DNA of 64,000 nucleotides, taken from positions 186,001 through 250,000 of the IMG/VR virus record IMGVR_UViG_3300032236_002285. One strand, written 5' to 3'. Below the pieces are notes generated by a model that worked only from the letters and a program-made list of their open reading frames with translations, was not told the DNA's origin and searched no databases. Positions within the stretch are counted from its first letter, which is position 1. Each line of letters starts with the position of its first letter. Below are positions 32,027 to 50,799 of this stretch, one piece after another. The position numbers and the translations under genes are program-made.

Positions 32027-32368
32027 ATGAAGTCATTATGGCAATGGGAAAAACACGATGTTGTTAATTACCTAAGAGCAAATTTTTTAGAGACAGATGT
32101 TGAGTTTACAACAGAATCTCTAATTAAAAAGATTAACAAATCAAAATCAAAATCTTACGGTTTTGGTTATATTGATAAGATAATATCAAAGCACTTATCT
32201 GATTTGGCAACAGACGGATATCTAACAGTTAGATATGTTTCTGTTAAAATGGAACCAAATGAAGAATACTGGTATTCTGAAAAATGTAAAAAAAGATTTG
32301 GTTCAAAGACAGTATCAGTCTATAAAATGGTAGGAAGAGAGGAAAAAATAAAAAAAATATTGAAATAA
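32027..32368 (+). CDS. hypothetical protein ending REEKIKKILK
   Basis: ORF behind host-type promoter 31901-31932. Confidence 0.65.
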   Translation: MKSLWQWEKHDVVNYLRANFLETDVEFTTESLIKKINKSKSKSYGFGYIDKIISKHLSDLATDGYLTVRYVSVKMEPNEEYWYSEKCKKRFGSKTVSVYKMVGREEKIKKILK

Positions 32369-32457
32369 ATTTGGTAGAATTAAAACTTTTTACTAATTTT
32401 GTATAAAATAAGAACAAAAATAACAAAAGAGACAATAACTTTTTAATATATAAAGAA

Positions 32458-32565
32458 ATGAGAACAAATAATACACATAAACATTTTAGTAAATCGAATA
32501 AGTGGTTTAGCAACCAGTTCGGTACTGAAAGTGTATTGCTCTCAAATAAGATGTTAAAAGTCTAA
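32458..32565 (+). CDS. attenuator leader peptide 1 (His/Phe/Trp)
   Basis: MRTNNTHKHFSKSNKWFSNQFGTESVLLSNKMLKV; between promoter 32370-32401 and terminator. Confidence 0.75.
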   Translation: MRTNNTHKHFSKSNKWFSNQFGTESVLLSNKMLKV

Positions 32566-32584
32566 TTTTAGATAAACAATATTC

Positions 32585-32620
32585 AAAAGTCCGAACTTCA
32601 AAAAAGTTCGGACTTTTTTG
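32585..32620 (+). terminator. attenuator terminator 1
   Basis: AAAAGTCCGAACTT / AAGTTCGGACTTTT followed by T run. Confidence 0.9.
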
Positions 32621-32628
32621 TTTTATAT

Positions 32629-32714
32629 GGTGTCGTTATTGTTAACGGAGAGTCGAAAGACGAGCATCTGGCTCTGTGAAAGCCAGGGTACGGGTTCAAA
32701 TCCCGTACGACACC
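32629..32714 (+). tRNA. tRNA-His(GUG) with G-1:C73 and a hairpin insertion in the D-loop
   Basis: Loop CT-GTG-AA; 8-bp acceptor; GTC-GAAA-GAC in D-loop. Confidence 0.75.
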
Positions 32715-32720
32715 CAAGAA

Positions 32721-32796
32721 GGAACCTAAGCTAATCAGGTGAAAGCACTGGACTGAAAATCCAGGGAGCCCGGATCGTTACCGGGAGGTTCCACCA
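32721..32796 (+). tRNA. tRNA-Phe(GAA)
   Basis: CTGGA-CTGAAAA-TCCAG; CCA encoded; atypical T-loop ATCGTTA. Confidence 0.85.
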
Positions 32797-32804
32797 AAAT
32801 AAAT

Positions 32805-32878
32805 GGTGTATGTAGCTCAATCGGTAGAGCGTCGGTTTGTGGAGCCGAAGGTAGCGGGATCGTAACCCGTCATTCACC
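32805..32878 (+). tRNA. tRNA-His(GUG)
   Basis: TCGGT-TTGTGGA-GCCGA; G-1 and C73. Confidence 0.85.
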
Positions 32879-32883
32879 CAAAA

Positions 32884-32955
32884 GGAGACTTAGCTGAGAC
32901 GGTTTAGCGTTTGGTTGAAGCCCAAAAGAGGTCGGTTCGATTCCGGCAGTCTCCA
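32884..32955 (+). tRNA. tRNA-Phe(GAA)
   Basis: TTTGG-TTGAAGC-CCAAA. Confidence 0.8.
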
Positions 32956-32961
32956 CAACAT

Positions 32962-33032
32962 ACGTCATACAGACAAGGTGTCGGTCAGGTCTCCAAAACC
33001 TCGACGGTGGGGTTCGATTCCTCAATGGCGTG
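32962..33032 (+). tRNA. tRNA-Trp(CCA)
   Basis: AGGT-CTCCAAA-ACCT; G73. Confidence 0.8.
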
Positions 33033-33038
33033 CTAAAT

Positions 33039-33110
33039 ACGGGTATGGTGTAATGGCTAACATTTTGGTCTCCAAAACCAAAGATCTTGATTCGAATTCA
33101 GGTACCCGTG
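33039..33110 (+). tRNA. tRNA-Trp(CCA)
   Basis: TTGGT-CTCCAAA-ACCAA; G73. Confidence 0.85.
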
Positions 33111-33174
33111 CTAAAAGGTTCGTGTCTTTTTTTGATGTTTCGGACTTAATATATAGAATAAATAAGTTTTATAT

Positions 33175-33717
33175 ATGAAAGAGGAAATATTAAAGTTAAG
33201 AAGTGAAGGTAAGACTTTTAATGAAATAAAAGAAATACTAAAATGTTCAAAATCTACAATATCTTACCATTGTAGTGATGAACAAAAAGAAAAATCTAGA
33301 AATAGAACTAGAAAAAGAAGAGAGAATTTAATTCACTCTAAACTTGAAAGTTTTATCTATAGAAAAGAAAAAAATGTAAAAGAAGGAATAAGAAAGTTTC
33401 AAAAAACTGACTCAAATTCTAAAGGAAGGGTTAATAGTAATATTAAAACAACATTTAATTGGGTTGATGTTTTGAATAAGTTTGGTGAAAATACATATTG
33501 TTATTTGTCTGGAGAGAAAATTAACCTATATGAAGATAACTACAACTTTGACCATATTATACCAGTTAGTAAAAATGGTAGTAATAGTTTAGAAAACTTA
33601 GGAATTCTACACGAAAAAGTAAATAGAATGAAATCTGACTTATCACCAGAAGAATTAATAGAATGGTGTAAAAAGATTTTAGAGTTTAATAATTATAAAA
33701 TAGAAAAATTAGATTAA
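33175..33717 (+). mobile_element. HTH-HNH endonuclease inserted in tRNA array
   Basis: DHIIPVSKNGSNSLENLGILHEKVNRMKSD. Confidence 0.85.
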
Positions 33718-33791
33718 GAGTATGAAAACTAAATTGAAATATAAACGCTAGGCAACGATTCGAGTCACGGATCGTTGCCCTCAACAACAAT

Positions 33792-33864
33792 GATTCCGTA
33801 GCTCAATTGGTGGAGCTTCCGGCTTTTAACCGGAAGGATGTGAGTTCGAACCTCACCGGAATCA
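33792..33864 (+). tRNA. tRNA-Lys(UUU)
   Basis: TCCGG-CTTTTAA-CCGGA. Confidence 0.9.
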
Positions 33865-33871
33865 CTAAAAT

Positions 33872-33958
33872 GGTTCTGTCGCTTAGCGGCTATAGCAACT
33901 GGCTTTTAACCAGTAGAGATAATGTTCTCAACCGTGGGTTCGAGTCCCACCAGGACCA
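33872..33958 (+). tRNA. tRNA-Lys(UUU) with long variable arm
   Basis: ACTGG-CTTTTAA-CCAGT then GAGA-taatgt-TCTC arm. Confidence 0.8.
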
Positions 33959-33966
33959 CTAAAAAC

Positions 33967-34050
33967 ACTCCTGTCGCTCAGAGGTCGAGAGCAACTGGCT
34001 TTTAACCAGTAGACGCAAGTCCATCGTAGGTTCGAATCCTACCAGGAGTA
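33967..34050 (+). tRNA. tRNA-Lys(UUU) with long variable arm
   Basis: ACTGG-CTTTTAA-CCAGT then GAC-GCAA-GTC arm. Confidence 0.8.
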
Positions 34051-34054
34051 CTAA

Positions 34055-34137
34055 CGATTCGTCGCATAGTGGCTATTGCACCTGACTCTTAATCAGGCGA
34101 AGAAATTCAATCGTGGGTTCGAGTCCCACCGGGTCGA
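34055..34137 (+). tRNA. tRNA-Lys(CUU) with long variable arm
   Basis: CCTGA-CTCTTAA-TCAGG then GAA-gaaa-TTC arm. Confidence 0.8.
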
Positions 34138-34145
34138 CAAAAAAT

Positions 34146-34251
34146 AGTCAAGTGGCGAAAAGGCGAGACGCATAAGAGTTAATCTTTTGGGGTAGACCGA
34201 AGAACCGCGAAAAAGAAGGTTCCCATACAGGTTCGAGTCCTGTCTTGACTA
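34146..34251 (+). tRNA. atypical tRNA-Leu(UAA)-like gene with very long variable region
   Basis: AGTCAAG/CTTGACT acceptor, A73, Leu-like D arm, weak anticodon arm GT-TAA-TC, ~35 nt variable region. Confidence 0.55.
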
Positions 34252-34260
34252 CAAAAATAT

Positions 34261-34404
34261 GGAGAGAGTAGCTCAGTTGGTTAGAGCACGTATTCATTCT
34301 CTGACAAGGATTCTCTGATTATGGTCAACATAATTAGTAGTGATGTTAAGAGATACTTCGGTCTGTTAAACCCGTGGTCGTAGGTTCGAGTCCTACCTCT
34401 CTCC
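34261..34404 (+). tRNA. tRNA-Asn(GUU) interrupted by ~69 nt structured insert
   Basis: Removing 34291-34359 restores CGGGT-CTGTTAA-ACCCG; extra G-1:C73 pair. Confidence 0.7.
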
Positions 34405-34432
34405 CAAATATTAGATTATTAAAAAAATAAAA

Positions 34433-35065
34433 ATGGAAATAAAATTAGAAAGTACTTACAAAGGAACAAGGATTCTTTTTAAGGACAGCGCTAAAAATAA
34501 AAGAAAGTTACTAAATAGCATGATTGATATTTTAGAATCATATGGTTATCAGGAAATAATGATACCTATTATTCAAAAACAAGAAACATTTCAGTCAAAA
34601 GTTGGTGATGAAAACAGAAATATGATGTTTAACTTCAAAGACAGAGGTGATAGAGATTTGTGTTTATCTCCAGAGTACACGGCAATTGTTCAACAATTAT
34701 CAAGTGATAAAATGAAATATGATAAAGATGTAAAAATGTTTTATATCGGTGAATGTTTCAGAGGAGAAAATACACAATCTGGAAGATGGAGACAATTTAC
34801 ACAATTTGGAGTTGAAGTTATAAATCCAAGTAAAGATTATACTGATGAAATGGTTGAAATTGCCAGTAAACTAATTGAGTTAGTTACAAAAAATTATGAA
34901 GTAAATCTGGAAACTACAAGAGGACTTGACTACTACAAAGGTGGAAAAGGATTTGAAATTGCTTGTCCCGAATTAGGATCATCTAAGCAAATTTGTGGAG
35001 GTGGTTCATATGATGGTGGTATTGGATTTGCTGTTGGTGTAGATAGATTACTATTATGTAAATAA
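34433..35065 (+). CDS. minimal histidyl-tRNA synthetase-like catalytic core (no anticodon-binding domain)
   Basis: Motif 1 GYQEIMIPII, LSPEYTA, motif 2 FRGENTQSGRWRQFTQFGVE, GLDYY, motif 3 GGGSYD-GGIGFAVGVDRL; only 210 aa. Confidence 0.8.
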   Translation: MEIKLESTYKGTRILFKDSAKNKRKLLNSMIDILESYGYQEIMIPIIQKQETFQSKVGDENRNMMFNFKDRGDRDLCLSPEYTAIVQQLSSDKMKYDKDVKMFYIGECFRGENTQSGRWRQFTQFGVEVINPSKDYTDEMVEIASKLIELVTKNYEVNLETTRGLDYYKGGKGFEIACPELGSSKQICGGGSYDGGIGFAVGVDRLLLCK

Positions 35066-35074
35066 AAATAAATT

Positions 35075-35202
35075 GGGGATGTAGCTCAGTGGTAGAGAAA
35101 ACTATCTCTTTTGAAAATTTACCTCATAAGAGTGTTGATTGAGAGAGTTACTTCGTATATTTTGAAATTATAAGGTCGTGGGTTCGAATCCCACCATCCC
35201 CA
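35075..35202 (+). tRNA. tRNA (anticodon probably UGA) interrupted by ~55-60 nt structured insert
   Basis: GGGGATG/CATCCCC acceptor, canonical D and T arms, insert ending TTACTTCG; anticodon assignment uncertain. Confidence 0.6.
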
Positions 35203-35281
35203 CAAAAAAGATTTGGTAAATCAATAAAAAAGATTTACTTTTGTAAAAACAAAGAAAAGAAAATTAATATATAATAAAGTT

Positions 35282-35359
35282 ATGAAAACAATTATGCTTA
35301 CATCGAAGTCGTCAAGTAGTCGCTCGTCAAAACCGAGTGAGGTTCGATCGTATTCATAA
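35282..35359 (+). CDS. attenuator leader peptide 2 (Ser/Arg)
   Basis: MKTIMLTSKSSSSRSSKPSEVRSYS; 10 Ser and 2 Arg in 25 aa; promoter 35212-35243. Confidence 0.85.
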   Translation: MKTIMLTSKSSSSRSSKPSEVRSYS

Positions 35360-35382
35360 TATTCGTATAAAGATATTTTATG

Positions 35383-35415
35383 AAACCCTCGAACTTAATG
35401 TTTGAGGGTTTTTTT
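35383..35415 (+). terminator. attenuator terminator 2
   Basis: AAACCCTCGAAC-ttaat-GTTTGAGGGTTT followed by T run. Confidence 0.9.
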
Positions 35416-35426
35416 GTTTTATATAT

Positions 35427-35501
35427 GGTTCTATAGTTTAAATGGATAAAACACTCGGCTACGAACCGAGAGACGTGAAGGTTCGAATCCTTCTGGAACT
35501 A
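35427..35501 (+). tRNA. tRNA-Arg(ACG)
   Basis: CTCGG-CTACGAA-CCGAG. Confidence 0.9.
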
Positions 35502-35507
35502 CAAATT

Positions 35508-35598
35508 GGAGAAGTCAACCGAAATTGGTATCGGCCTAGTCTTGAAAACTAGTCATCGGCGATGAGTTGGTGTGTCGGTTCGAGTCCGACCTTCTCCG
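35508..35598 (+). tRNA. tRNA-Ser(UGA)
   Basis: CTAGT-CTTGAAA-ACTAG, long V arm, G73. Confidence 0.9.
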
Positions 35599-35603
35599 CA
35601 ACC

Positions 35604-35689
35604 GGAAGGAGTCCGAATGGACGAGGAACTTGTCTTGAAAACAAGCGGCTGTAAAAGGTTTGGGGGTTCGATTCCCTCTTCTTCCGCCA
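35604..35689 (+). tRNA. tRNA-Ser(UGA)
   Basis: CTTGT-CTTGAAA-ACAAG, G73, CCA. Confidence 0.9.
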
Positions 35690-35691
35690 AT

Positions 35692-35777
35692 GGAGAGTAA
35701 AGTAGCCAGGGTGCTACCACCGCCTGCTAAGCGAGTGGCCCATTAATTTGGGTGTGATTCGAGTTCACTGCTCTCCG
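35692..35777 (+). tRNA. tRNA-Ser(GCU)
   Basis: CGC-CTGCTAA-GCG, long V arm, G73. Confidence 0.85.
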
Positions 35778-35789
35778 CAAAAGATAACT

Positions 35790-35876
35790 GGAGAGTTGTC
35801 CGAGTGGTTTATGGAGCACGCTTGGAAAGCGTGTGTACTCGAAAGGGTACCGAAGGTTCGAATCCTTCACTCTCCG
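35790..35876 (+). tRNA. tRNA-Ser(GGA)
   Basis: CACGC-TTGGAAA-GCGTG, long V arm, G73. Confidence 0.9.
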
Positions 35877-35891
35877 CAAAAAAATTATATT

Positions 35892-36194
35892 ATGGATACA
35901 AGATATTTGACAAGACCAACATCATTTGAAACTACATTAGCTATTCTACAAGAATTGCTAAGTGAAAGATTATCACCGGAATGGAGGAGAATTTGGGTGC
36001 AAGGGTCTAATTCTGGTAGAACAAGATTCTGCTTTACTATATTTCCCAATACTGGAACATATACGATGAGATTTCATGATGTTGGTTCGTTTAGACAATT
36101 TAGAACCGATGGTGAATTAGAATCTGAATTTGAGCTATTAAATAGATTTATTACTTCTTTATCTGAAGGTGTATTAAAAGACATAATTATCTGA
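35892..36194 (+). CDS. hypothetical protein
   Basis: Start reassigned to ATG 35892; the upstream extension in the ORF track overlaps tRNAs. Confidence 0.55.
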   Translation: MDTRYLTRPTSFETTLAILQELLSERLSPEWRRIWVQGSNSGRTRFCFTIFPNTGTYTMRFHDVGSFRQFRTDGELESEFELLNRFITSLSEGVLKDIII

Positions 36195-36292
36195 AATTAA
36201 GAAAGGCTTTACTAATATATAGATTTATGAAAATTTTATCTATTTTAGTAAAGCCTTTAATTATGTATGTTAATTGGAGAATTAAATCTAGG

Positions 36293-37801
36293 TTAACTAA
36301 CCATTGATATCATAAACCAAGATCCTCCTCCATTTTTAAGAATTGTTATTGAACCATAATTACTATTTATGGTTTTTGCACCAGTTGAACCATCAATAGT
36401 TTCACCTAAATGTGGAGTTATAGTAATATTATTAGAACTTGCATTACCCGCTTCGTCTTTTATAATAACTATTTTACCATCTGTTAAAGTAGCAACACTT
36501 GCTAATGTTATACTAACAGATGTAGCAGTAGTATCTACCGGCCAATACTCTGGTTGAATTGATGGTAGTGCTAGAGGTGTTAATATAAAGCCAGATGGTG
36601 CTGAGATTGATGGATTAACAATAGGTCCGCCACTAACACCTGAAACACCTGAAGTACCGGATGAACCAGATGATCCGGAAACACCAGTTGATCCAATTTT
36701 ACCATCGTAATTCCAACTTATAGTATAAATATCTTCATCTATCAAAGTTACATTTGCTGGAGTAACCGATGATGCTGAACCTGATATTGTAAGATATGAA
36801 TAACCACCTGATACATTTTTAGCAACACTACCTCCTGTATTTTTGTTAATGGTATAGATACCTATAGGATCATTTGCTCCAAATCTTTTCAATTGAATAT
36901 AAGCCACTCTTCCTCTAAAAACTTGGTTGTATAAATCATCTAATAAATAATAATAGTCTGTTCCAACATAATCAAGTTGACCTATTGTTATTTGAGTTAA
37001 TGTTGTTACGTCAGTTGTATCAGTGTGAAAATGGTTAGGGTTATAAAGAGAACTTGAATACTTCCATCTACCTGAAAGTGCAGCACCATCATTACCACTT
37101 ACTCCTGATGAACCGGATGAACCCGATACACCACTTGTGCCTGAACTACCTGATGTGCCTGAACTACCAGATGAACCTGATGAACCTGATGAGCCAGACT
37201 GACCCATAGTTACCCAACTAATTGAATAGTTTTTACCACCTATTGCCATTCCATTTGATGAAACCTTAGTACAGTTAAAATTCCAAGAAGAACCCATATC
37301 TAAACCATTATTAACTTGGTAAATAACATAGTTATTAGCAGCATCGATCTGAGTTATCTTCATATATCCTTGATTTGGATAAGAAGTTAAAAAACTTCCT
37401 AAAGATGCTAACCAACTTGTGGCATCACCGCTTTCACTATAATAGTTTATATTAACATTATTACTTACTTGAGAAAAATCTGTATTACCTAAATTATATT
37501 GACCATTAATAGAATTGCTACCATAAACCCATCTTAGTGTATTAGAGCCATCAGCGCCACTTAAACCCGAAGTTCCTGATGAACCATTAGGACCAGTAGC
37601 ACCAACATGACCTGAGGTACCTGATGAACCTGATGAGCCAGATGACCCACTTCCACCACCACCTGAACCTATTACGGTAACATTACCTGATGTATCTTTT
37701 TGTTTAAGTACTCCGTCTAGATCTAGACCCATTAAAATACCTGATGACGGAGTTGCTGCTCCGGACATATCAATATAAGTAGAAAGTGAAATTAAACTCA
37801 T
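36293..37801 (-). CDS. Ser/Gly-repeat fibre-like (tail fibre/decoration) protein
   Basis: Three blocks of SGSSG/SGTSG/SGVSG repeats; TAATATATA at 37826-37834. Confidence 0.7.
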   Translation of the reverse strand: MSLISLSTYIDMSGAATPSSGILMGLDLDGVLKQKDTSGNVTVIGSGGGGSGSSGSSGSSGTSGHVGATGPNGSSGTSGLSGADGSNTLRWVYGSNSINGQYNLGNTDFSQVSNNVNINYYSESGDATSWLASLGSFLTSYPNQGYMKITQIDAANNYVIYQVNNGLDMGSSWNFNCTKVSSNGMAIGGKNYSISWVTMGQSGSSGSSGSSGSSGTSGSSGTSGVSGSSGSSGVSGNDGAALSGRWKYSSSLYNPNHFHTDTTDVTTLTQITIGQLDYVGTDYYYLLDDLYNQVFRGRVAYIQLKRFGANDPIGIYTINKNTGGSVAKNVSGGYSYLTISGSASSVTPANVTLIDEDIYTISWNYDGKIGSTGVSGSSGSSGTSGVSGVSGGPIVNPSISAPSGFILTPLALPSIQPEYWPVDTTATSVSITLASVATLTDGKIVIIKDEAGNASSNNITITPHLGETIDGSTGAKTINSNYGSITILKNGGGSWFMISMVS

Positions 37802-44239: not shown

Positions 44240-44997
44240 TGAAACCCAAAGTTAGTGTAATAATACCTTGTTATAATTATGATAAGTATATTGAACAATG
44301 TCTTATGTCTGTTGTTTTGCAAAATCGAGATTTTAATATTGAGGTTTTAATAGGTGATGACAATTCAACAGATAAGAGTATTGAAATTATTGAAAGATTT
44401 AGTAGGTATTATAGATATGATAATTTAAAATATAAAATATACTCACATGATAAAAATTTAGGTGAAATTAATAATACAAAATTTCTTTTAGATAATTGTG
44501 AAGGTGAATATATTGCTTATTTAGATGCTGATGATTACTGGACAGATCCAAATAAATTAAAAAATCAATTAGAGTTTTTAGATAATAATAAAGACTACTC
44601 ACTTTGTATAACAGGCTATATTCAATTAAAAAATGGTGTTGATTATAACCCAAATGTTAATTTTAAAAGCTGGCTTTGCCCTAAAGATATAAATAATATG
44701 AATTCTGATGCTCTGTCTAAAGGTAATATAGTTGGTTCATCATCTTCTAGAGTATTCAGAAATTATAAAGATTTAGTTAAAGATTACTTTTATGATTTTC
44801 CTTATTCAGATTGGGTAATGAATTTTGAATTATCTCTAAAAGGTAAAATAGGTTATTTAAATTTTCCAAGTTATGTTTATCGAATGCATGATAATTCTTT
44901 ATCTACAAAAGATTTACAAGCTGAGAATAAAGAAGAACTATATAATAAAAGAGTTAGTATTTTAAAGTCTGAGCTAAATAAATATCTAAATAATTAA
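44239..44997 (+). CDS. GT2 glycosyltransferase
   Basis: VSVIIPCYN, GDDNSTD, YIAYLDADDYW. Confidence 0.9.
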   Translation: MKPKVSVIIPCYNYDKYIEQCLMSVVLQNRDFNIEVLIGDDNSTDKSIEIIERFSRYYRYDNLKYKIYSHDKNLGEINNTKFLLDNCEGEYIAYLDADDYWTDPNKLKNQLEFLDNNKDYSLCITGYIQLKNGVDYNPNVNFKSWLCPKDINNMNSDALSKGNIVGSSSSRVFRNYKDLVKDYFYDFPYSDWVMNFELSLKGKIGYLNFPSYVYRMHDNSLSTKDLQAENKEELYNKRVSILKSELNKYLNN

Positions 44998-45073
44998 AAA
45001 TTTTATTGTATATTTGTAAAAAATAAGAAAAGGGACTAAACTTTTTTAATATATACACATACAATAAAAACAT

Positions 45074-45145
45074 TGCGGGGTAGAGAAGAGGCATCTCGCC
45101 AGGCTCATAACCTGGAGGTCAGTGGTTCGAATCCACTCCCCGCTA
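45074..45145 (+). tRNA. initiator tRNA-fMet(CAU)
   Basis: 1:72 mismatch, CCAGG-CTCATAA-CCTGG. Confidence 0.85.
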
Positions 45146-45309
45146 CAAATAGAAAGACAGGACAAATATCTGATCAGCCCCAAGAAGGTAGGGTAGAGTA
45201 CTCTGAACAAGTCTTTCTAAGGAATTAAAAAAATATTAAAAATATTTGGTGAAATAAAAATTTCACCGTATATTTGTAAAACAATTAAGAAATTATAAAA
45301 ACTAAAACA

Positions 45310-45387
45310 ATGACAACTATTACTAACATAGCGTATTATTATGAGGGAGAGCGTAGCTCAAACGTCAGACTAATGTCTATGTCGTAA
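45310..45387 (+). CDS. attenuator leader peptide 3 (Tyr/Glu)
   Basis: MTTITNIAYYYEGERSSNVRLMSMS; promoter 45245-45276. Confidence 0.85.
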   Translation: MTTITNIAYYYEGERSSNVRLMSMS

Positions 45388-45409
45388 TGGTTTCATTATG
45401 ATATTTTCT

Positions 45410-45440
45410 AACCCAGTCTGACTTTCAGACTGGGTTTTTT
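45410..45440 (+). terminator. attenuator terminator 3
   Basis: AACCCAGTCTG-acttt-CAGACTGGGTT followed by T run. Confidence 0.9.
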
Positions 45441-45455
45441 GTTTTAAAATAAATT

Positions 45456-45540
45456 GGGAGTATAACGTCAGCGGTGTGTAAGCCGCCCCTAATCAAAGAG
45501 ACGTATAGAGGTAACTTGTGTGCAAATCCAGGTACTCCCA
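45456..45540 (+). tRNA. degenerate tRNA-like element (no resolvable anticodon arm)
   Basis: Perfect GGGAGTA/TACTCCC acceptor and TGCAAAT T-loop-like segment; middle does not fold canonically. Confidence 0.4.
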
Positions 45541-45546
45541 CAAAAT

Positions 45547-45618
45547 GGTCCTGTCGACTAATGGTCAGGTTACAAGACTTTCAATCTTGAGATGCGGGTT
45601 CGATTCCCGTCAGGACTA
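45547..45618 (+). tRNA. tRNA-Glu(UUC)
   Basis: CAAGA-CTTTCAA-TCTTG. Confidence 0.9.
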
Positions 45619-45625
45619 CAAATAT

Positions 45626-45711
45626 GCTACGGTATGCAAACCGGAATAAGCGACCAGACTTTCAATCTGGACATCGAAAGATGTGTGCGGGTTCGAGCCC
45701 CGTCCGTAGTA
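45626..45711 (+). tRNA. tRNA-Glu(UUC) with long variable arm
   Basis: CCAGA-CTTTCAA-TCTGG then ACATC-GAAA-GATGT. Confidence 0.8.
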
Positions 45712-45718
45712 CAAATAA

Positions 45719-45802
45719 GGGAGAGCGCCAACGTTGGAGAGTTGGGCTTGTCTGTAAAACAAGTGGCTTACGCCTGAGTGGGTTCGATTCCCACCTCTCC
45801 CA
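45719..45802 (+). tRNA. tRNA-Tyr(GUA)
   Basis: CTTGT-CTGTAAA-ACAAG, V arm. Confidence 0.85.
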
Positions 45803-46103
45803 CAAAAAATTAAACAAAAAAAATGAAAAGTTGAAAGTGAAAGATGATAATTATGTTGGTAGTTATCTTTTTATCAAAACCAGTAATGTCACAGAACATT
45901 ATTAAATACCAACAAAAAACAAAAATTGATTTGAGATTAAATAAGTCAATTGAAAACCAAAAGGTTCTTTTTAAGAAAACTAAATTAGAATCTGATAACT
46001 TTGAAATTAAAATTAGTCACGATTAGCTGATTAATAAAAAGTTTAGAATCAGGTTTACTTTATGTTTAGACATGAAAGAATTTTTTACCAAAGAGTAAAA
46101 AAT

Positions 46104-46176
46104 GATGCTATCGACTAATGGTTTAGGTCGCCATCCTCTCAAGGTGGAAATACGGGTTCGAATCCCGTTAGCATTA
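46104..46176 (+). tRNA. tRNA-Glu(CUC)
   Basis: CCATC-CTCTCAA-GGTGG. Confidence 0.9.
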
Positions 46177-46241
46177 CAAAAAATTAAACAAATGTTTGGA
46201 TATTAAAAAAGTATCCTTATCTTTGTAAAAGAATAAAAAAT

Positions 46242-46313
46242 GGTCCCGTCGTCTAATGGTTAGGACAATGCCCTTTCACGGCATAGATTTCGGTTCAAAT
46301 CCGTGCGGGACTA
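46242..46313 (+). tRNA. tRNA-Glu(UUC)
   Basis: ATGCC-CTTTCAC-GGCAT. Confidence 0.9.
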
Positions 46314-46402
46314 CAATAAAAACAGATAACTCCGGTATGGTCTCAATCATTACTTAGAACCGGGCTTTGGAAAGTTACAAGTTGAGATTCTGTTTTTTAT
46401 AT

Positions 46403-46485
46403 TGGAAGGTGGCCGAGTGGTTAATGGCGCTTGACTGTAAATCAAGTCTCTTGCGAGTACGGGGGTTCGAATCCCTCCCTTCCAA
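46403..46485 (+). tRNA. tRNA-Tyr(GUA)
   Basis: CTTGA-CTGTAAA-TCAAG, V arm. Confidence 0.9.
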
Positions 46486-46550
46486 CAAAAATAAAAAAAA
46501 TTAAAAGGGAAGACAAAACTTTTTATATATACATTAATATAATTAAAACG

Positions 46551-46631
46551 ATGAAAAATTTAACTAACATATCAACAGCAATCATAGGAGGCGGCGCGGG
46601 AGCGAATGTCACTGGCTGGACTATGTTATAA
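46551..46631 (+). CDS. attenuator leader peptide 4 (Gly/Ala/Ile)
   Basis: MKNLTNISTAIIGGGAGANVTGWTML. Confidence 0.85.
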   Translation: MKNLTNISTAIIGGGAGANVTGWTML

Positions 46632-46655
46632 TCTTTCATCAAAAGAATTAAACGT

Positions 46656-46688
46656 AACCCAGTCAGTGAAAATTGACTGGGTTTTTTT
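46656..46688 (+). terminator. attenuator terminator 4
   Basis: AACCCAGTCAGT-GAAA-ATTGACTGGGTT followed by T run. Confidence 0.9.
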
Positions 46689-46692
46689 ATTT

Positions 46693-46776
46693 CGGCAGGT
46701 ACCGATGGTGTCTTATACACACTATAACCGTAGCGGGAAGTTGAAAACGTGGGTTCGAATCCCACCCTGCCGACCA
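46693..46776 (+). tRNA. D-arm-deficient tRNA-like gene, anticodon UAU (Ile-like)
   Basis: CGGCAGG/CCTGCCG acceptor, A73-CCA, canonical T arm, GGTGT-CTTATAC-ACACT, long V region, almost no D arm. Confidence 0.5.
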
Positions 46777-46836
46777 ACTGAGAAAACAGTAAATCGTGAG
46801 CCAACACTAAAACCATCCCACCAGGATGTAAAACTC

Positions 46837-46908
46837 GCGGGTATCGTATAGTGGCTATTACTCCTTCCTTCCAAGTAGGAGACGTCGGTTCGATTCCGGC
46901 TACCCGCT
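46837..46908 (+). tRNA. tRNA-Gly(UCC)
   Basis: Loop CT-TCC-AA; GCG acceptor, U73. Confidence 0.9.
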
Positions 46909-46916
46909 CAAATTTT

Positions 46917-46991
46917 GGGGTCACATGTACCAAGGCTAGGCGATGATGCTTTGCAAGCATCGTGTGGTGAGTTCGATTCTCACTGGCTCCA
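46917..46991 (+). tRNA. tRNA-Ala(UGC)
   Basis: GATGC-TTTGCAA-GCATC; G3:U70. Confidence 0.85.
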
Positions 46992-47010
46992 CAAAAAATG
47001 AATAGTAAAA

Positions 47011-47178
47011 ATGACTATATTCAAATATTTAGTAGATGGAAAACTTTACTTCTTGTACAATGGAGTAAATGGATATATTGCTATACCATTTGAGCATAGT
47101 GGAAATACTATATCAAATCCAAATCTTGATGAATTTGTACCAGTGAAAATGGGCAATGGTTCTGATGGATTTGTATAA
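47011..47178 (+). CDS. small hypothetical protein (55 aa) inside tRNA array
   Basis: Hand translation MTIFKYLVDGKLYFLYNGVNGYIAIPFEHSGNTISNPNLDEFVPVKMGNGSDGFV. Confidence 0.5.
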   Translation: MTIFKYLVDGKLYFLYNGVNGYIAIPFEHSGNTISNPNLDEFVPVKMGNGSDGFV

Positions 47179-47181
47179 AAT

Positions 47182-47256
47182 GCGAAAGTCGTATAGTGGC
47201 TATTATATCAGCTTGCCAAGCTGAGGACGGCAGTTCGATTCTGCTCTTTCGCTCCA
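47182..47256 (+). tRNA. tRNA-Gly(GCC)
   Basis: TCAGC-TTGCCAA-GCTGA; U73-CCA. Confidence 0.9.
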
Positions 47257-47260
47257 ATAT

Positions 47261-47298
47261 GCCGGATGATCCACCGTTGAATCGCGGTGCCGGCTCCA
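47261..47298 (+). ncRNA. tRNA minihelix-like element (acceptor plus T-like arm, ends UCCA)
   Basis: GCCGG/CCGGC and CACCG/CGGTG stems, TTGAATCG loop. Confidence 0.5.
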
Positions 47299-47372
47299 GG
47301 GGAATTAGCTCATTTGGCTAGAGCGCTTGTCTGGCAGACAAGAGGTGACGAGTTCAAATCTCGTATTCTCCA
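47299..47372 (+). tRNA. tRNA-Ala(GGC)
   Basis: CTTGT-CTGGCAG-ACAAG; G3:U70. Confidence 0.9.
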
Positions 47373-47379
47373 CTAATAA

Positions 47380-47459
47380 GCGGGTGTCGTATAGTGGCAC
47401 GTAGTAGATTATGCCGGTCTTCCAAACCGGAGATGTGAGTTCGATTCTCATCACCCGCT
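47380..47459 (+). tRNA. tRNA-Gly(UCC) with enlarged D-loop
   Basis: CCGGT-CTTCCAA-ACCGG; U73. Confidence 0.85.
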
Positions 47460-47461
47460 CA

Positions 47462-47605
47462 AAGATAGTAGTAATGTACGAGTGTTACTTCGTATTTCCA
47501 ACGACTAGTTCAGGTTCGAATCCTGGGTTCCGCTCAAATGATAATATGCGGGATTAGTGTAACGGTAGCACAGTAAAAACACACTCAGCAAATTTTCTCT
47601 ATCTT
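47462..47605 (+). tRNA. circularly permuted tRNA (Gly-type acceptor) flanked by the split insert module
   Basis: 3' half (anticodon, T arm, GTTCCGC-T) at 47491-47534 precedes 5' half (GCGGGAT plus D arm) at 47548-47574; flanks pair AAGATAG/CTATCTT and GAGTGT/ACACTC. Confidence 0.7.
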
Positions 47606-47609
47606 ATTA

Positions 47610-47679
47610 GGGCCAGATGCCAACGGCAGGTCAACTCGCTTGCACCGAGATTGTTTGGGTTCGATTCCCACTGTGTCCA
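47610..47679 (+). tRNA. degenerate tRNA-Ala(UGC)-like gene
   Basis: CTCG-CTTGCAC-CGAG; G3:U70-like pair; bulged acceptor. Confidence 0.5.
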
Positions 47680-47835
47680 CTATATTTATTTTTCATAGCT
47701 ACCTAAACTTCAATATATTAATTATATATATACCATTAGATTAGATTAAAGAAAGGTTTTTAGACAGTTTAGTATTTTTAGATTAAAGAATGACTTGAAG
47801 TTAGACAATTAACTAAAAAATAACTATGCTAAAAA

Positions 47836-50799
47836 ATGAAAAAGATCCTAAAGTTCTTACTAGTGTCATTGACTCTAGTATTTTTTGTGCCTAAACAAGC
47901 ACAAGCCTCTCATTGCGCTGGAGCTGAATTATTATTCCAATGGCTTCATGACTCAACTTATCAACTTTATTACAAGTTTTACCGTGATTGTGCCGGTATT
48001 AATGAGCCAACAAATGTTACAGTTTGTTGTAGTAACAATTGTAATTCAACTACAATCAACGTAATTTTAAACAAAGTTACTACACTTATTCCTCCTGGTG
48101 TAAATAATGGAAATGAAGTTGCTAGAGTTTGTCCTGGTATACATACCACTTGTGGTAATCCAGCCGGAACAACACCTGGCTACAGAGAATGGTGGTATGC
48201 TAATACTGTAACTCTACCATCAAGATGTAACCACTGGACTTTTTCAGTAAGTCAGTCAGCTAGAAACTCTGGTATTACTAATTTATCTAATCCAGGTTCT
48301 CAAAATCTTTATACAGAAGCCACACTTGATAATAGAGATGCTCAAGGTGATACCTCACCTTTCTTTTCTGTTAAGCCGGTCCCGTATATCTGTGCTAATA
48401 TACCATACACTTATAACAATGGAGCTTATGACTTAAATAACGACTCTATGGTGTTTAAAATTGTTCAACCAAATGGTGGCTCAGGTTGTCCTCCAACCAC
48501 GTCAGCCATTGCTTTTGCTAATACAACACCAAGTTTAAATCTAACTGATAATCCTTTACAAACAAACAATACTTTTTCTATAAATGCTCAAAATGGATTG
48601 ATGAGTTTTACTCCAGCTGGAACACAAATTGCAGTTGTAACTATTCAAGTAGATGAATATAGAAATGGTAGAAAAATTGGTTCTGTAATGCGTGATATTC
48701 AAATTATTGTTTTGTCTTGTAATGTTCAGCAACCAGAAGTAAATATATCTGCTGCTTCTTTAAATAATGCAACTCTTGATAATAATGGAAACATTACAGC
48801 TTGTGCTGGAACACCTTTTAGTTTTTGTTTTGATGCTACAACACCAGATTCAAATGGTATTTTACTCGCATCTGATAACTCAAATATTGTAATGCCTAAT
48901 TCAGTAGTATCATATACTAATCAAACTACAGATACGGTTACTGGTTGTTTTTCTTGGTGGCCTTCTGTGTATGATACAGGTTATAAAATTTTTACAATAA
49001 CTATAATGGATTCATCTTGTCGTCCTCCTGGCTTAATGTTTTCACAAACATTTACCTTACCAATTTATGTTTGGCCTGCGACTAATATTCTAAGTGATAC
49101 CACAATCTGTAGAGGTGGTGCTGCAAATTTACTTGCTGTTGGTGGTGGAAATTTTATTTGGTCGGTTTTACCAGGAGGTTCTGCTTTATCAACTTTAAAC
49201 TGCACAAACTGCTCAAATCCAGTTGCTACTCCAATAATCACAACTCAGTATGTAGCTACATCTCAAATAACAAATGCTATTTGTAAAAATAAAGATACGG
49301 TAACAGTAGCGGTTATTCAACCATTTCAGATTATACTACCTGATACAACAACATGTGTTAATAATTCTTTACAATTAAATGCAGTAGTTAATACAACAAA
49401 TAATTATACTATATCCTGGACACCAAATACTTATTTAAGTAATGCTGGTATTAATAATCCAATTGTAACACCACCATCTGGTCAATCATTGATAACTTAC
49501 TATGTTAAAGTTTCTTCAATTGGTTCATCAGCTTGTTCAGTTACAGATACATTCAAATTAAAAGTTTTACAAGGATTTACTATCTATAATCATGATACAA
49601 CAATTTGTCTTGGTAAATCAGTAAATATAGCCGGCTCTGGTGATGCTTTATATAATTATACTTGGACACCAACCAGTGGTATAAGTACAATACTTACACC
49701 ATCAATAACACCAAATGTAGTTACAACAACAACGTATATTTTAACAGGTAAATATCCTGGTTGTAAAGATTCTACTAATAAAATTAAAATCACAACAGAA
49801 CCTGTACCAACTGTAGTAGCTGGTGCTGATAGACAAATATGTAGTGGTGATACTATTCATCTTACACCTTTAGTTACTCCAAGTTATCCATATGTTTACA
49901 CTTGGACACCAGGATCTTCATTAGATAATCCAAATTCTGAATTTGCTATCTTTTCAGGATTAATCACAACTCATTTATCACTAACTGTTAAATCACCAGT
50001 TGCTAATTGTTCATCAGCTGATAGTTTAATTATTAATGTAGTTAAACAATCTTTCTTAAAGGTTTCACCACAAGACACTTCAATTTGTCCATCTGATACA
50101 GTTATGATTAAATTAACCACACCTAATGATAAGTTAGTTATTTTTAATTGGAGCCCTCATAATTTTATCAGTGATTATAATTCAGTTAATCCTTATTTAT
50201 ACCCACCAACATCAATGGTTTATACTGCTTGGGCTACTGATACAGCTGGTTGTAATGATACTATATCAGCTTATATTGAAATTAGACCAGGTGCTGTAAT
50301 TGACATGCCTACATCAATTGGTTTATATCCTGGTGATTCTTATCAAATAACACCTCAAACTAACTGTACTAAATTTATTTGGTTTCCATCAAGTGGTTTA
50401 AATTATGACTCATTATCAAATCCAACAGTGACCAACTTAGGAGTTAATACTAAGTATATAGTTATTGGTCAAACAGAATGGGGATGTAAAGTATCTGATT
50501 CAATAAATGTAATGGTTATTAATGATTCTTATATTGATATACCTAATGCTTTTTCACCTACAGGTGATCACAATAAAACACTAAAAGTAATTCATTTAGG
50601 TTCTGCTACTCTTGAATATTTTAGAATATACAATAGATGGGGTAATAAAGTTTTTGAAACAAATGATATTAATGTTGGATGGGATGGTACTTATAATGGT
50701 CAAGCTCAATCACAAGGTGTTTATGTTTATGAAGTAAAAGCAATAACATATAAAGGTAGGGTCTTTATTAAACAAGGCAATATAACTTTGATGAAATAA
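47836..50799 (+). CDS. secreted adhesin-like protein with T9SS type-B (gliding motility-associated) C-terminal domain
   Basis: Signal peptide, ASHCAGAE start, Ig/PKD-like repeats, IPNAFSP...FRIYNRWGNKVFE...WDGTYNG...GVYVY...GNITLMK. Confidence 0.9.
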   Translation: MKKILKFLLVSLTLVFFVPKQAQASHCAGAELLFQWLHDSTYQLYYKFYRDCAGINEPTNVTVCCSNNCNSTTINVILNKVTTLIPPGVNNGNEVARVCPGIHTTCGNPAGTTPGYREWWYANTVTLPSRCNHWTFSVSQSARNSGITNLSNPGSQNLYTEATLDNRDAQGDTSPFFSVKPVPYICANIPYTYNNGAYDLNNDSMVFKIVQPNGGSGCPPTTSAIAFANTTPSLNLTDNPLQTNNTFSINAQNGLMSFTPAGTQIAVVTIQVDEYRNGRKIGSVMRDIQIIVLSCNVQQPEVNISAASLNNATLDNNGNITACAGTPFSFCFDATTPDSNGILLASDNSNIVMPNSVVSYTNQTTDTVTGCFSWWPSVYDTGYKIFTITIMDSSCRPPGLMFSQTFTLPIYVWPATNILSDTTICRGGAANLLAVGGGNFIWSVLPGGSALSTLNCTNCSNPVATPIITTQYVATSQITNAICKNKDTVTVAVIQPFQIILPDTTTCVNNSLQLNAVVNTTNNYTISWTPNTYLSNAGINNPIVTPPSGQSLITYYVKVSSIGSSACSVTDTFKLKVLQGFTIYNHDTTICLGKSVNIAGSGDALYNYTWTPTSGISTILTPSITPNVVTTTTYILTGKYPGCKDSTNKIKITTEPVPTVVAGADRQICSGDTIHLTPLVTPSYPYVYTWTPGSSLDNPNSEFAIFSGLITTHLSLTVKSPVANCSSADSLIINVVKQSFLKVSPQDTSICPSDTVMIKLTTPNDKLVIFNWSPHNFISDYNSVNPYLYPPTSMVYTAWATDTAGCNDTISAYIEIRPGAVIDMPTSIGLYPGDSYQITPQTNCTKFIWFPSSGLNYDSLSNPTVTNLGVNTKYIVIGQTEWGCKVSDSINVMVINDSYIDIPNAFSPTGDHNKTLKVIHLGSATLEYFRIYNRWGNKVFETNDINVGWDGTYNGQAQSQGVYVYEVKAITYKGRVFIKQGNITLMK

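Follow-up and report, generated by a model that had tools for sequence, protein, structure and literature searches.

A putative ribosome-mediated attenuator in front of a phage tRNA array

Does a short open reading frame (ORF) that is followed by a terminator hairpin and then by an array of tRNA genes serve as a translated leader that decides whether these tRNAs are transcribed? The window analysed here, by which we mean the whole stretch of 64,000 nucleotides (30% G+C), holds four such leader, terminator and tRNA units, designated A to D (Table 1), and a first-pass annotation had read unit A as a leader-peptide attenuator. We consider it likely that unit A is a ribosome-mediated, four-segment transcription attenuator regulating tRNA genes, a conclusion reached in the absence of RNA-level or experimental evidence.

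Table 1. Window coordinates of the four units and of the features surrounding unit A
Feature	Coordinates	Strand	Details
Bacteroidota-type promoter consensus	32370..32401	+	-33 TTTG, -7 TAATTTTG; 5' of the unit A leader
TTAATATATA motif	32443..32452	+	5 nt 5' of the leader ATG
Unit A leader ORF	32458..32565	+	ATG at 32458, TAA ending at 32565; 35 codons
Unit A regulatory zone	codons 7-16		His7, Lys8, His9, Phe10, Lys12, Lys15, Trp16
Segments 1:2 hairpin	32484..32530	+	19 bp, 32484-32507 with 32512-32530; -13.0 kcal/mol; MFE helices
Segment 2, antiterminator strand	32516..32526	+	Inside the ORF, codons 20-23; partner 32588-32597
Intrinsic terminator	32585..32622	+	14-bp stem, 5-nt loop, T-tract; -17.6 kcal/mol; 5' arm (segment 3) 32585-32598, 3' arm (segment 4) 32604-32617
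tRNA array	32629..33111	+	His-like, Phe, His, Phe, Trp-like, Trp
HNH endonuclease ORF	33175..33717	+	Pfam HNH_4, 5.7e-10
Putative distal operon part	33792..34415	+	tRNA-Lys x4, tRNA-like gene, Asn(GTT)-like gene with insertion
HisRS-like class II core	34433..35065	+	210 aa; Pfam tRNA-synt_His, 2.7e-26
Unit B	35282..35412	+	Leader 35282-35359, terminator 35382-35412; before tRNA Arg-Ser-Ser-Ser
Unit C	45310..45436	+	Leader 45310-45387, terminator 45410-45436; YYYEGE run; before Glu/Tyr tRNAs
Unit D	46551..46683	+	Leader 46551-46631, terminator 46656-46683; IIGGGAGA run; before Ile-like/Gly/Ala tRNAs

The anatomy of unit A is shown directly by its sequence. The leader ORF, which begins with MRTNNTHKHFSKSNKWFSNQF, carries His at codons 7 and 9, Phe at 10, 17 and 21 and Trp at 16, an exact match to the positions claimed in the first-pass annotation. 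Lys codons stand at 8, 12, 15, 31 and 34 and Asn codons at 4, 5, 14, 19 and 30, and the earlier remark that the leader has several of both thus held as a codon count. The proposal that went with it, that these codons answer to Lys and Asn tRNAs further downstream, held for Lys, whose codons belong to the conserved regulatory ones. For Asn it is weak, since Asn codons are frequent in all leaders of this type and the unit-A arrays of relatives lack a tRNA-Asn.

The terminator begins 19 bases past the TAA stop of the leader. The first-pass annotation had claimed that positions 32516-32526 can pair with the 5' arm of this terminator and closely copy its 3' arm, and both claims held. The duplex comprises 10 bp and one bulged T (-12.8 kcal/mol), as compared with -5.8 ± 1.8 kcal/mol when the ORF was dinucleotide-shuffled 500 times (p=0.004), and the unit A ORF pairs with its own 5' arm better than do all 46 leader ORFs taken from units with unrelated terminators. 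Moreover, segment 2 co-varies with both arms among the homologues described below. In the minimum free energy (MFE) fold the 1:2 hairpin sequesters segment 2 when segment 1 is free of a ribosome. As folds, the segments show the classical 1:2, 2:3 and 3:4 arrangement; its operation is predicted by the model only.

The effect of a ribosome on these alternative pairings was modeled by cutting the transcript before the 3' arm and masking a 29-nt ribosome footprint at each A-site codon in turn. With no ribosome on unit A, the 1:2 hairpin forms and the 5' arm of the terminator is left free. With a ribosome at any of codons 1-16 the 2:3 antiterminator is predicted to form, and from codon 17 on it is not. 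In the other nine unit-A homologues the switch boundary falls at codons 16-20, just past the Lys-Trp-Phe cluster, and in units B-D it falls right past the Ser/Arg, Tyr/Glu and Ile/Gly/Ala clusters, respectively. Phe17 and Phe21 fall within segment 2 or adjoin it, outside the zone in which a stall would be productive, and according to the model they cannot be productive sensors. In units B-D, which have no 1:2 hairpin, and in several unit-A homologues, the antiterminator folds even without a ribosome. Closing these units would need a ribosome to get as far as the end of the ORF, and termination would hinge on tight coupling of transcription and translation, which counts against the model.

We propose the following mechanism. 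That the promoters are used, that transcription and translation are coupled, which way the response goes and what triggers it physiologically are all inferences, and coupling in the presumed Bacteroidota host is assumed. Transcription would begin at the promoter-like motifs upstream, and the leader would be translated as RNA polymerase moves on. With ample aminoacyl-tRNAs for His, Lys, Phe and Trp the ribosome would pass codon 16, segment 2 would be covered, or segment 1 (32484-32507) would capture it again, the terminator (32585-32617) would form, and the transcript would stop short of the tRNA genes. Under a shortage of these aminoacyl-tRNAs the ribosome would stall within codons 7-16 and mask segment 1; segment 2 would then pair with the 5' arm of the terminator, and polymerase would carry on past the terminator into His-Phe-His-Phe-Trp-Trp and the Lys tRNAs, with the HisRS-like gene probably included. 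Without any translation unit A would be closed, as it would be with smooth translation. The outcome would be a negative feedback in which the phage tops up just those decoders that ribosomes are short of, the shortage arising either because host tRNAs are run down or cleaved in infection or because the AT-rich codon usage of the phage overdraws them.

Unit A by itself is merely suggestive (enrichment p≈0.03, pairing p≈0.004), and it is the context that carries the case. His, Phe and Trp make up 6 of the 34 residues of its leader, an enrichment with a binomial p=0.03 over the whole ORF and with p=0.18 when judged against random short ORFs of these AT-rich genomes. A skeptical reading would be that an ordinary terminator lies next to a chance or independent mini-ORF, that the hairpin just ends an upstream unit or a tiny gene, that the likeness of codons and tRNAs is coincidental, and that the tRNAs are expressed by constitutive leak-through or from an unrecognised promoter. 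In favor of this reading are the weak enrichment, the many Lys/Asn/Phe-rich short ORFs that AT-rich genomes produce, and the lack of RNA data; two sequencing runs labelled 'RNA-Seq' are probably DNA, consist of short contigs of relatives and are uninformative on 3' ends and read-through. The amino-acid signal of unit A becomes compelling only because paralogous and homologous units agree with it.

Such units are numerous. The leader of unit B contains an SKSSSSRSS run, and Ser or Arg accounts for 12 of its 24 residues (p=4e-6). The nearest GenBank relatives of the window, both uncultured, are phages of 635 and 642 kb; these two huge phages, LR745206 and LR756502, carry all four units, and one has a fifth, in which a leader with MNLNMNLNTLTVVNNTL precedes an Asn-Asn-Leu-Val-Ile-Thr... 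array. Among GenBank phages the leader is common to only these two, with no cultured relative found. In IMG/VR we recovered 47 units on more than 30 contigs by a terminator pattern scan and then by a blind finder of short ORF, terminator and tRNA that picked the ORF without regard to tRNA identity. Most of the 120 loci returned by the generic terminator scan of IMG/VR were unrelated terminators, and only loci followed by tRNAs were used. Among them, a leader with QQQQQ precedes Gln-Gln-Gln, a Tyr/Lys-rich one stands 5' of Lys-Lys-Tyr-Lys, and one rich in Asn/Ile/Tyr/Cys/Glu is followed by Tyr-Glu-Asn-Tyr-Cys-Ile. Where a Glu-Tyr-Glu-Ile-Gly-Ala array is merged, its leader likewise combines the two compositions. 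A comparable leader and terminator are found 5' of the HisRS-like gene in relatives. The leaders of all units have similar N-termini (M-K/R/T-T-I/N...).

Leader composition follows array content down to codon choice. Scored against their own arrays, the leaders of 50 non-identical units had a mean z of 3.0, as compared with 0.2 ± 0.2 for permuted arrays (p<=5e-5), and all 18 of the 18 amino acids tested were commoner in leaders whose array has the corresponding tRNA. When nine families were each reduced to one representative, the true assignment of leaders to arrays was essentially the best of 362,880. At the level of codons, 19 of the 21 Arg codons in leaders can be read by the array's own tRNA-Arg (5.1 expected); most are CGN, fitting tRNA-Arg(ACG), in genomes that are dominated by AGA. 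The corresponding figures were 25/28 for Ala (12.6 expected) and 39/56 for Ile (26.3 expected). The permutation and similar p-values should be interpreted with some caution since the units are related to one another and independence is consequently overstated.

Conservation was assessed among homologues of unit A. A first, stricter pattern matched only the window's own contig, IMGVR_UViG_3300032236_002285 (476 kb); the pattern scans for unit A gave 11 viral and 67 metagenomic loci with 61 non-identical copies, all of them 5' of His/Phe/Trp/Lys arrays. A scan of 185,579 species genomes of bacteria and archaea returned no copy of the unit-A leader motif. Within codons 2-19, two His are present in 50/61 copies, three Lys in 49/61, two Phe in 58/61 and one Trp in 61/61. 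The ATG is kept in all 61 copies, as the collection required, and the indels inspected are in frame. The regulatory codons and pairing segments are invariant and other leader positions vary freely, with a His codon moving between positions 9 and 14 among homologues. In one lineage with a Lys-Phe-Ser-Ser-Ser-Phe-Trp array the leader has one His fewer and more Ser and Phe, and no tRNA-His was called in the 1.1 kb of available sequence.

Antiterminator and terminator change together among these copies. At least three clearly different unit-A stems occur, each with its own mimic inside the ORF at codons 20-24, the stem cores being CCGAAC, CCCAAGTT, GACCGAAT, CTCGAAT and TCTGAAT. For each of the three common stem forms the best partner of the 5' arm is its own ORF (-11 to -13 kcal/mol), as against -4.8 to -10 kcal/mol for cross-pairs between forms. 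Where the pairing register is shared, to which the count was restricted, the ORF base just 5' of TTCGG, the base it pairs with in the 5' arm and the corresponding base of the 3' arm read G/C/G in 30 copies and A/T/A in five, and mixed combinations were absent. These results come from duplex searches run sequence by sequence, a matrix of cross-compatibility and a contingency table. Column-wise pair counting on a MAFFT alignment was dropped; segment 2 of two copies (L004 and L096) was misregistered, and the stem types differ in register. The pairing is not uniformly strong. In 27 of 50 units the own ORF beats at least 95% of unrelated ORFs at pairing with its own 5' arm; some related units, e.g. 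L023, L038 and L115, have no good pairing between ORF and 5' arm, and two rare unit-A types (L004 and L131) have weak antiterminators.

The comparative data leave the chance reading very unlikely. First, it would have to account for a correspondence that extends across at least nine unit families, 18/18 amino acids and the codons themselves. Secondly, the start of the ORF is kept, the inspected indels preserve its frame, and segment 2 co-varies with the terminator. Thirdly, a mere ~8 nt separates the T-tract from the first tRNA-like gene (~32629), a gap that leaves no space for a promoter belonging to the unit A array. In the other units the first tRNA or tRNA-like gene follows the terminator after a few to ~20 nt, again too little for the arrays to have separate promoters. 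We also considered whether the A/T-rich stretch that separates terminator from tRNA might be a promoter and ruled this out, as the tRNA starts 0-8 nt after it.

The same elements could in principle have another output or the opposite sign: they might act in the processing or stability of the tRNA precursor, produce an RNA or peptide that acts in trans, or turn a stall into termination. Precedent exists in rhizobial trpL, for which terminated attenuator RNAs and leader peptides with functions in trans are known (PMC6614838, PMC7298713), and a stall at Phe17 or Phe21 would indeed block the antiterminator. Against this, the peptide can vary freely except at the regulatory codons. Over codons 1-19 of the unit A homologues the variable columns are distributed 7/7/8 over the three codon positions, with no third-position bias, and the variant codons comprise 4 synonymous and 23 non-synonymous ones; a coding-type substitution pattern was looked for in these leaders and not found. 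Freely varying positions and the lack of a coding-type pattern therefore fit a leader peptide without a function of its own. Moreover, in each of the units most regulatory codons precede the switch boundary, and the covariation of the pairing points to a decision at the terminator. We regard these alternatives as very unlikely and retain the reading in which a stall opens the terminator.

What would be opened was examined gene by gene. The His-Phe-His-Phe-Trp-Trp order given in the first-pass annotation held in part. ARAGORN and Rfam call Phe at 32721, His at 32806, Phe at 32884 and Trp at 33039, together with four Lys tRNAs at 33792-34138; the first 'His' (~32629-32712) and the first 'Trp' (32961-33035) score below threshold and are only tRNA-like, their anticodon loops being GUG and CCA, respectively, and their D regions deviant. 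The homologue of the first His-like gene in LR745206 is called as a tRNA-His. That the two most promoter-proximal tRNA-like genes are structurally deviant counts against the model. The tRNA-Asn of the earlier annotation also held in part: a gene at 34260-34415 has the GTT loop, contains an insertion of ~70 nt and scores below the Rfam threshold. Both tRNA-like genes behind the Lys genes bear insertions.

The HNH ORF between the Trp and Lys genes is absent from LR745206, and a related metagenomic contig skips 33022-33705. This ORF is an insertion rather than an ancestral member of the operon, and in the ancestral operon the His/Phe/Trp genes therefore run directly into the Lys genes. HNH endonuclease and ligase-like genes near the tRNA arrays are common ground with known phage tRNA clusters. 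A scan of the + strand for terminator-like hairpins from 32617 to 35382, where the attenuator of unit B is reached, found none. Read-through would therefore also reach the Lys genes, the tRNA-like genes and the HisRS-like core, whose co-transcription with the array we infer, from sequence alone, to be likely.

Upstream of the leader, two motifs are candidates for transcription initiation. Of the pattern TTTG-N17-21-TAnnTTTG the window has 15 copies (3.9 expected), a number reached in 0 of 100 shuffles; it is also found 5' of units B (35212) and C (45245) and is kept in homologues. That the copy at 32370..32401 works as a promoter is possible and is inferred from the consensus only. The TTAATATATA motif occurs 22 times against 3.2 expected. 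It precedes leaders A, B and D and the HNH ORF, stands directly before tRNA-Met at 45074, and is kept in homologues. It is a general phage motif and probably a promoter element, the function again being inferred.

An attenuator of this kind could also sense general translation capacity (ribosome availability, phage takeover or stress) and open all tRNA operons together. This explanation gains some support from units B-D, where in the absence of a 1:2 hairpin the antiterminator would be the default if no ribosome reaches the end of the ORF, and from the likeness of the N-termini in all leaders. However, it leaves unexplained why leaders carry the amino acids and the rare codons of their own array, and why merged arrays have merged leaders, and we consider it unlikely. 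The CGN Arg codons in an AGA-dominated genome suggest instead that the sensors read single isoacceptors and not amino-acid pools.

A further alternative is an RNA-only, T-box-like sensor that binds uncharged tRNA directly, the ORF being incidental. T-boxes likewise place the choice between antiterminator and terminator under the control of tRNA status, before translation-related genes, and in this the units resemble them. However, T-boxes bind uncharged tRNA without a ribosome, by means of Stem I with its specifier loop and the T-box antiterminator sequence, and unit A has neither. The leader, at ~165 nt, is too short and lacks the Stem I or specifier architecture; one leader would need to read four to five tRNA identities, and features of the ORF are conserved. 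No match to the T-box (RF00230) or to any other riboswitch was found with Rfam at E<=1 in 32300-36300 and 44900-48000. This alternative is all but excluded.

The ribosome-mediated reading, on the other hand, places unit A beside the classical leaders of Proteobacteria (trpL, hisL, pheL, leuL, thrL and ilvL), with which it has in common a short translated leader in which the regulatory codons cluster, a set of 1:2, 2:3 and 3:4 pairings that exclude one another, and a terminator directly 5' of the regulated genes. The trp terminator is more stable than its antiterminator, and the relative stabilities in unit A are similar. At the level of sequence and modeled folds, unit A has the features of a leader-peptide attenuator: a short same-strand ORF with a start codon lies 5' of the regulated genes; cognate regulatory codons are enriched and conserved, weakly for unit A alone but strongly across units; an intrinsic terminator separates ORF and tRNAs with no intervening promoter, as inferred from the 8-nt gap; the antiterminator pairing on the 5' arm is backed by covariation; and a stall at the regulatory codons is predicted by the model to favor the antiterminator, while one beyond them is not. 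The leader-peptide reading of the first-pass annotation is thus supported, with all sequence-level requirements fulfilled and each backed by comparative data. The resemblance is one of kind only. At permissive thresholds Rfam matches to Thr_leader, His_leader, the trpB motif and L10_leader were at chance level and driven by the terminator; His_leader, Thr_leader and the trpB motif remained below threshold (24-30 bits against gathering cutoffs of 49-59; E 0.18-0.53).

Attenuators of the trpL type regulate enzymes, whereas the phage units would regulate tRNAs and so feed the aminoacyl-tRNA signal back on the tRNA pool. Classical leaders have runs of one residue, whereas phage leaders are multi-amino-acid 'barcodes' whose codons are matched to the anticodons downstream. 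Furthermore, the system is encoded by a phage, apparently in an SD-poor Bacteroidota setting. A further parallel is E. coli pheST with its pheM leader, in which ribosome-mediated attenuation of a translation component also reads the supply of charged tRNA; pheST differs in that a synthetase protein is controlled, one amino acid is sensed and the operon is chromosomal. Clusters of tRNA genes are found in phages T4, T5, KVP40 and huge phages (Al-Shayeb et al. 2020), and the window resembles these in combining large arrays with a large phage. In the full-text literature searched, which did not cover older subscription papers, we came across no account of tRNA genes being controlled by leader-peptide attenuation. 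As far as this search extends, the proposed attenuation of tRNA genes, the composite barcode leaders and the viral nature of the system are new.

Phage tRNAs have been proposed to compensate for codon usage, to replace decaying host tRNAs or to permit escape from anticodon nucleases. We hypothesize, more broadly, that a clade of large freshwater or aquatic phages using Bacteroidota-type promoters gates nearly every tRNA operon by an isoacceptor-barcode leader, a reading toward which the balance of the evidence tips by a modest margin. If true, the phage would measure decoding capacity codon by codon and transcribe only those tRNAs that are in deficit, whether these run short through decay of host tRNAs, through a defence by anticodon nucleases or through the demand of its own AT-rich codons. 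Such a system would be the first in which leader peptides attenuate tRNA genes and the first in which a virus encodes homeostasis of the tRNA pool.

Our results bear on the long-standing question of why phages carry tRNAs and how these are expressed. Because the sensor is built from the codons of the array, the notion that a phage makes its tRNAs on demand, upon a failure of decoding, becomes directly testable. Attenuation of the trp type would be extended to stable RNA genes and to viruses, and the units would offer dozens of naturally occurring, orthogonal sensors of ribosome stalling at specific codons. Finally, the signature of leader, terminator and tRNA may help to annotate tRNA operons and to infer which codons limit translation in infection.

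Three Lys and one Glu tRNA genes in the arrays are 84-88 nt in size, and their variable arm forms a stem-loop, so that they resemble class II tRNAs. They neighbour Lys and Glu genes of normal size (33792 and 45547, respectively) and are likewise present in LR745206 and LR756502, two uncultured 630-640 kb phages that are the nearest GenBank relatives. Among tRNAs, long variable arms are usually found only in those for Leu, Ser, Tyr and Sec, and the charging of these genes with Lys or Glu is therefore not settled.

Other genes depart from the canonical form in different ways. In three tRNA-like genes, for which ARAGORN gave no call, the acceptor, D and T parts are normal but roughly 60-90 extra nt separate the D arm from the anticodon arm. 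At 34288-34376 the window has 87 nt; in the contig of a relative, a plain anticodon arm (Asn GTT) of 18 nt takes their place. The extra sequence could represent a non-canonical intron or an inserted element. Moreover, the first gene behind several attenuators is a tRNA-like sequence of deviant structure; all four deviant genes listed fall below both the ARAGORN and the Rfam thresholds. At locus L125, on a phage contig bearing similar leader/terminator/tRNA units, a tRNA with anticodon CTA (at ∼3155) was labeled 'Pyl' by ARAGORN. It is conceivable that this tRNA acts as a TAG suppressor, and it hints at stop-codon recoding in the L125 lineage.

Coordinates of tRNA-like genes, protein genes and promoter-like elements (window positions unless a locus is named)
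Feature	Position	Detail
tRNA-Lys, long variable arm	33872-33959	UUU
tRNA-Lys, long variable arm	33967-34051	UUU
tRNA-Lys, long variable arm	34055-34138	CUU
tRNA-Glu, long variable arm	45626-45712	UUC
Insertion-bearing tRNA-like	34143-34252	
Insertion-bearing tRNA-like	34260-34415	
Insertion-bearing tRNA-like	35075-35205	
Deviant tRNA-like	32629-32712	loop His GUG
Deviant tRNA-like	32961-33035	loop Trp CCA
Deviant tRNA-like	45455-45541	loop unknown
Deviant tRNA-like	46693-46772	loop Ile UAU
HNH endonuclease	33175-33717	N-terminal HTH
HisRS-like class II catalytic core	34433-35065	210 aa; relative: L003 20086-21061
Repeat ORF	36293-37801	- strand, 502 aa
tRNA-Met	45074-45146	CAT
Bacteroidota-type promoter consensus	46195-46225	
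TTAATATATA/TTTATATATA motif, example copies	32443-32452, 33146-33155, 35264-35273, 45046-45055, 46522-46531	

The HNH endonuclease gene interrupts the tRNA operon. It is missing in LR745206 and in a close metagenomic relative, where the contig joint leaves out 33022-33705, and has the appearance of a mobile insertion of the homing type. The HisRS-like core is without an anticodon-binding domain. Its LR745206 homologue is preceded by a short leader of its own, 14 codons long with a single conserved His, and by a terminator that is mimicked by a segment within the leader ORF. It is followed by two ligase-like ORFs that carry a KxDG motif, which may point to similar control of genes for tRNA repair or splicing. 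The repeat ORF carries long collagen-like repeats of the GSSGSSGTSG type and likely encodes a tail-fibre-like protein.

A Bacteroidota-type promoter consensus internal to the array behind attenuator unit C lies immediately upstream of tRNA-Glu (46242), and some tRNAs might consequently escape attenuator control. The tRNA-Met gene has the promoter-like TTAATATATA/TTTATATATA motif immediately upstream and, in contrast to the adjacent arrays, neither leader ORF nor terminator. Across the window the TTAATATATA/TTTATATATA motif occurs in 22 copies versus 3.2 expected, frequently 5-20 nt upstream of a start codon or tRNA, and we regard it as a probable phage-specific promoter element. If so, leader mRNAs initiated from it would be nearly leaderless.
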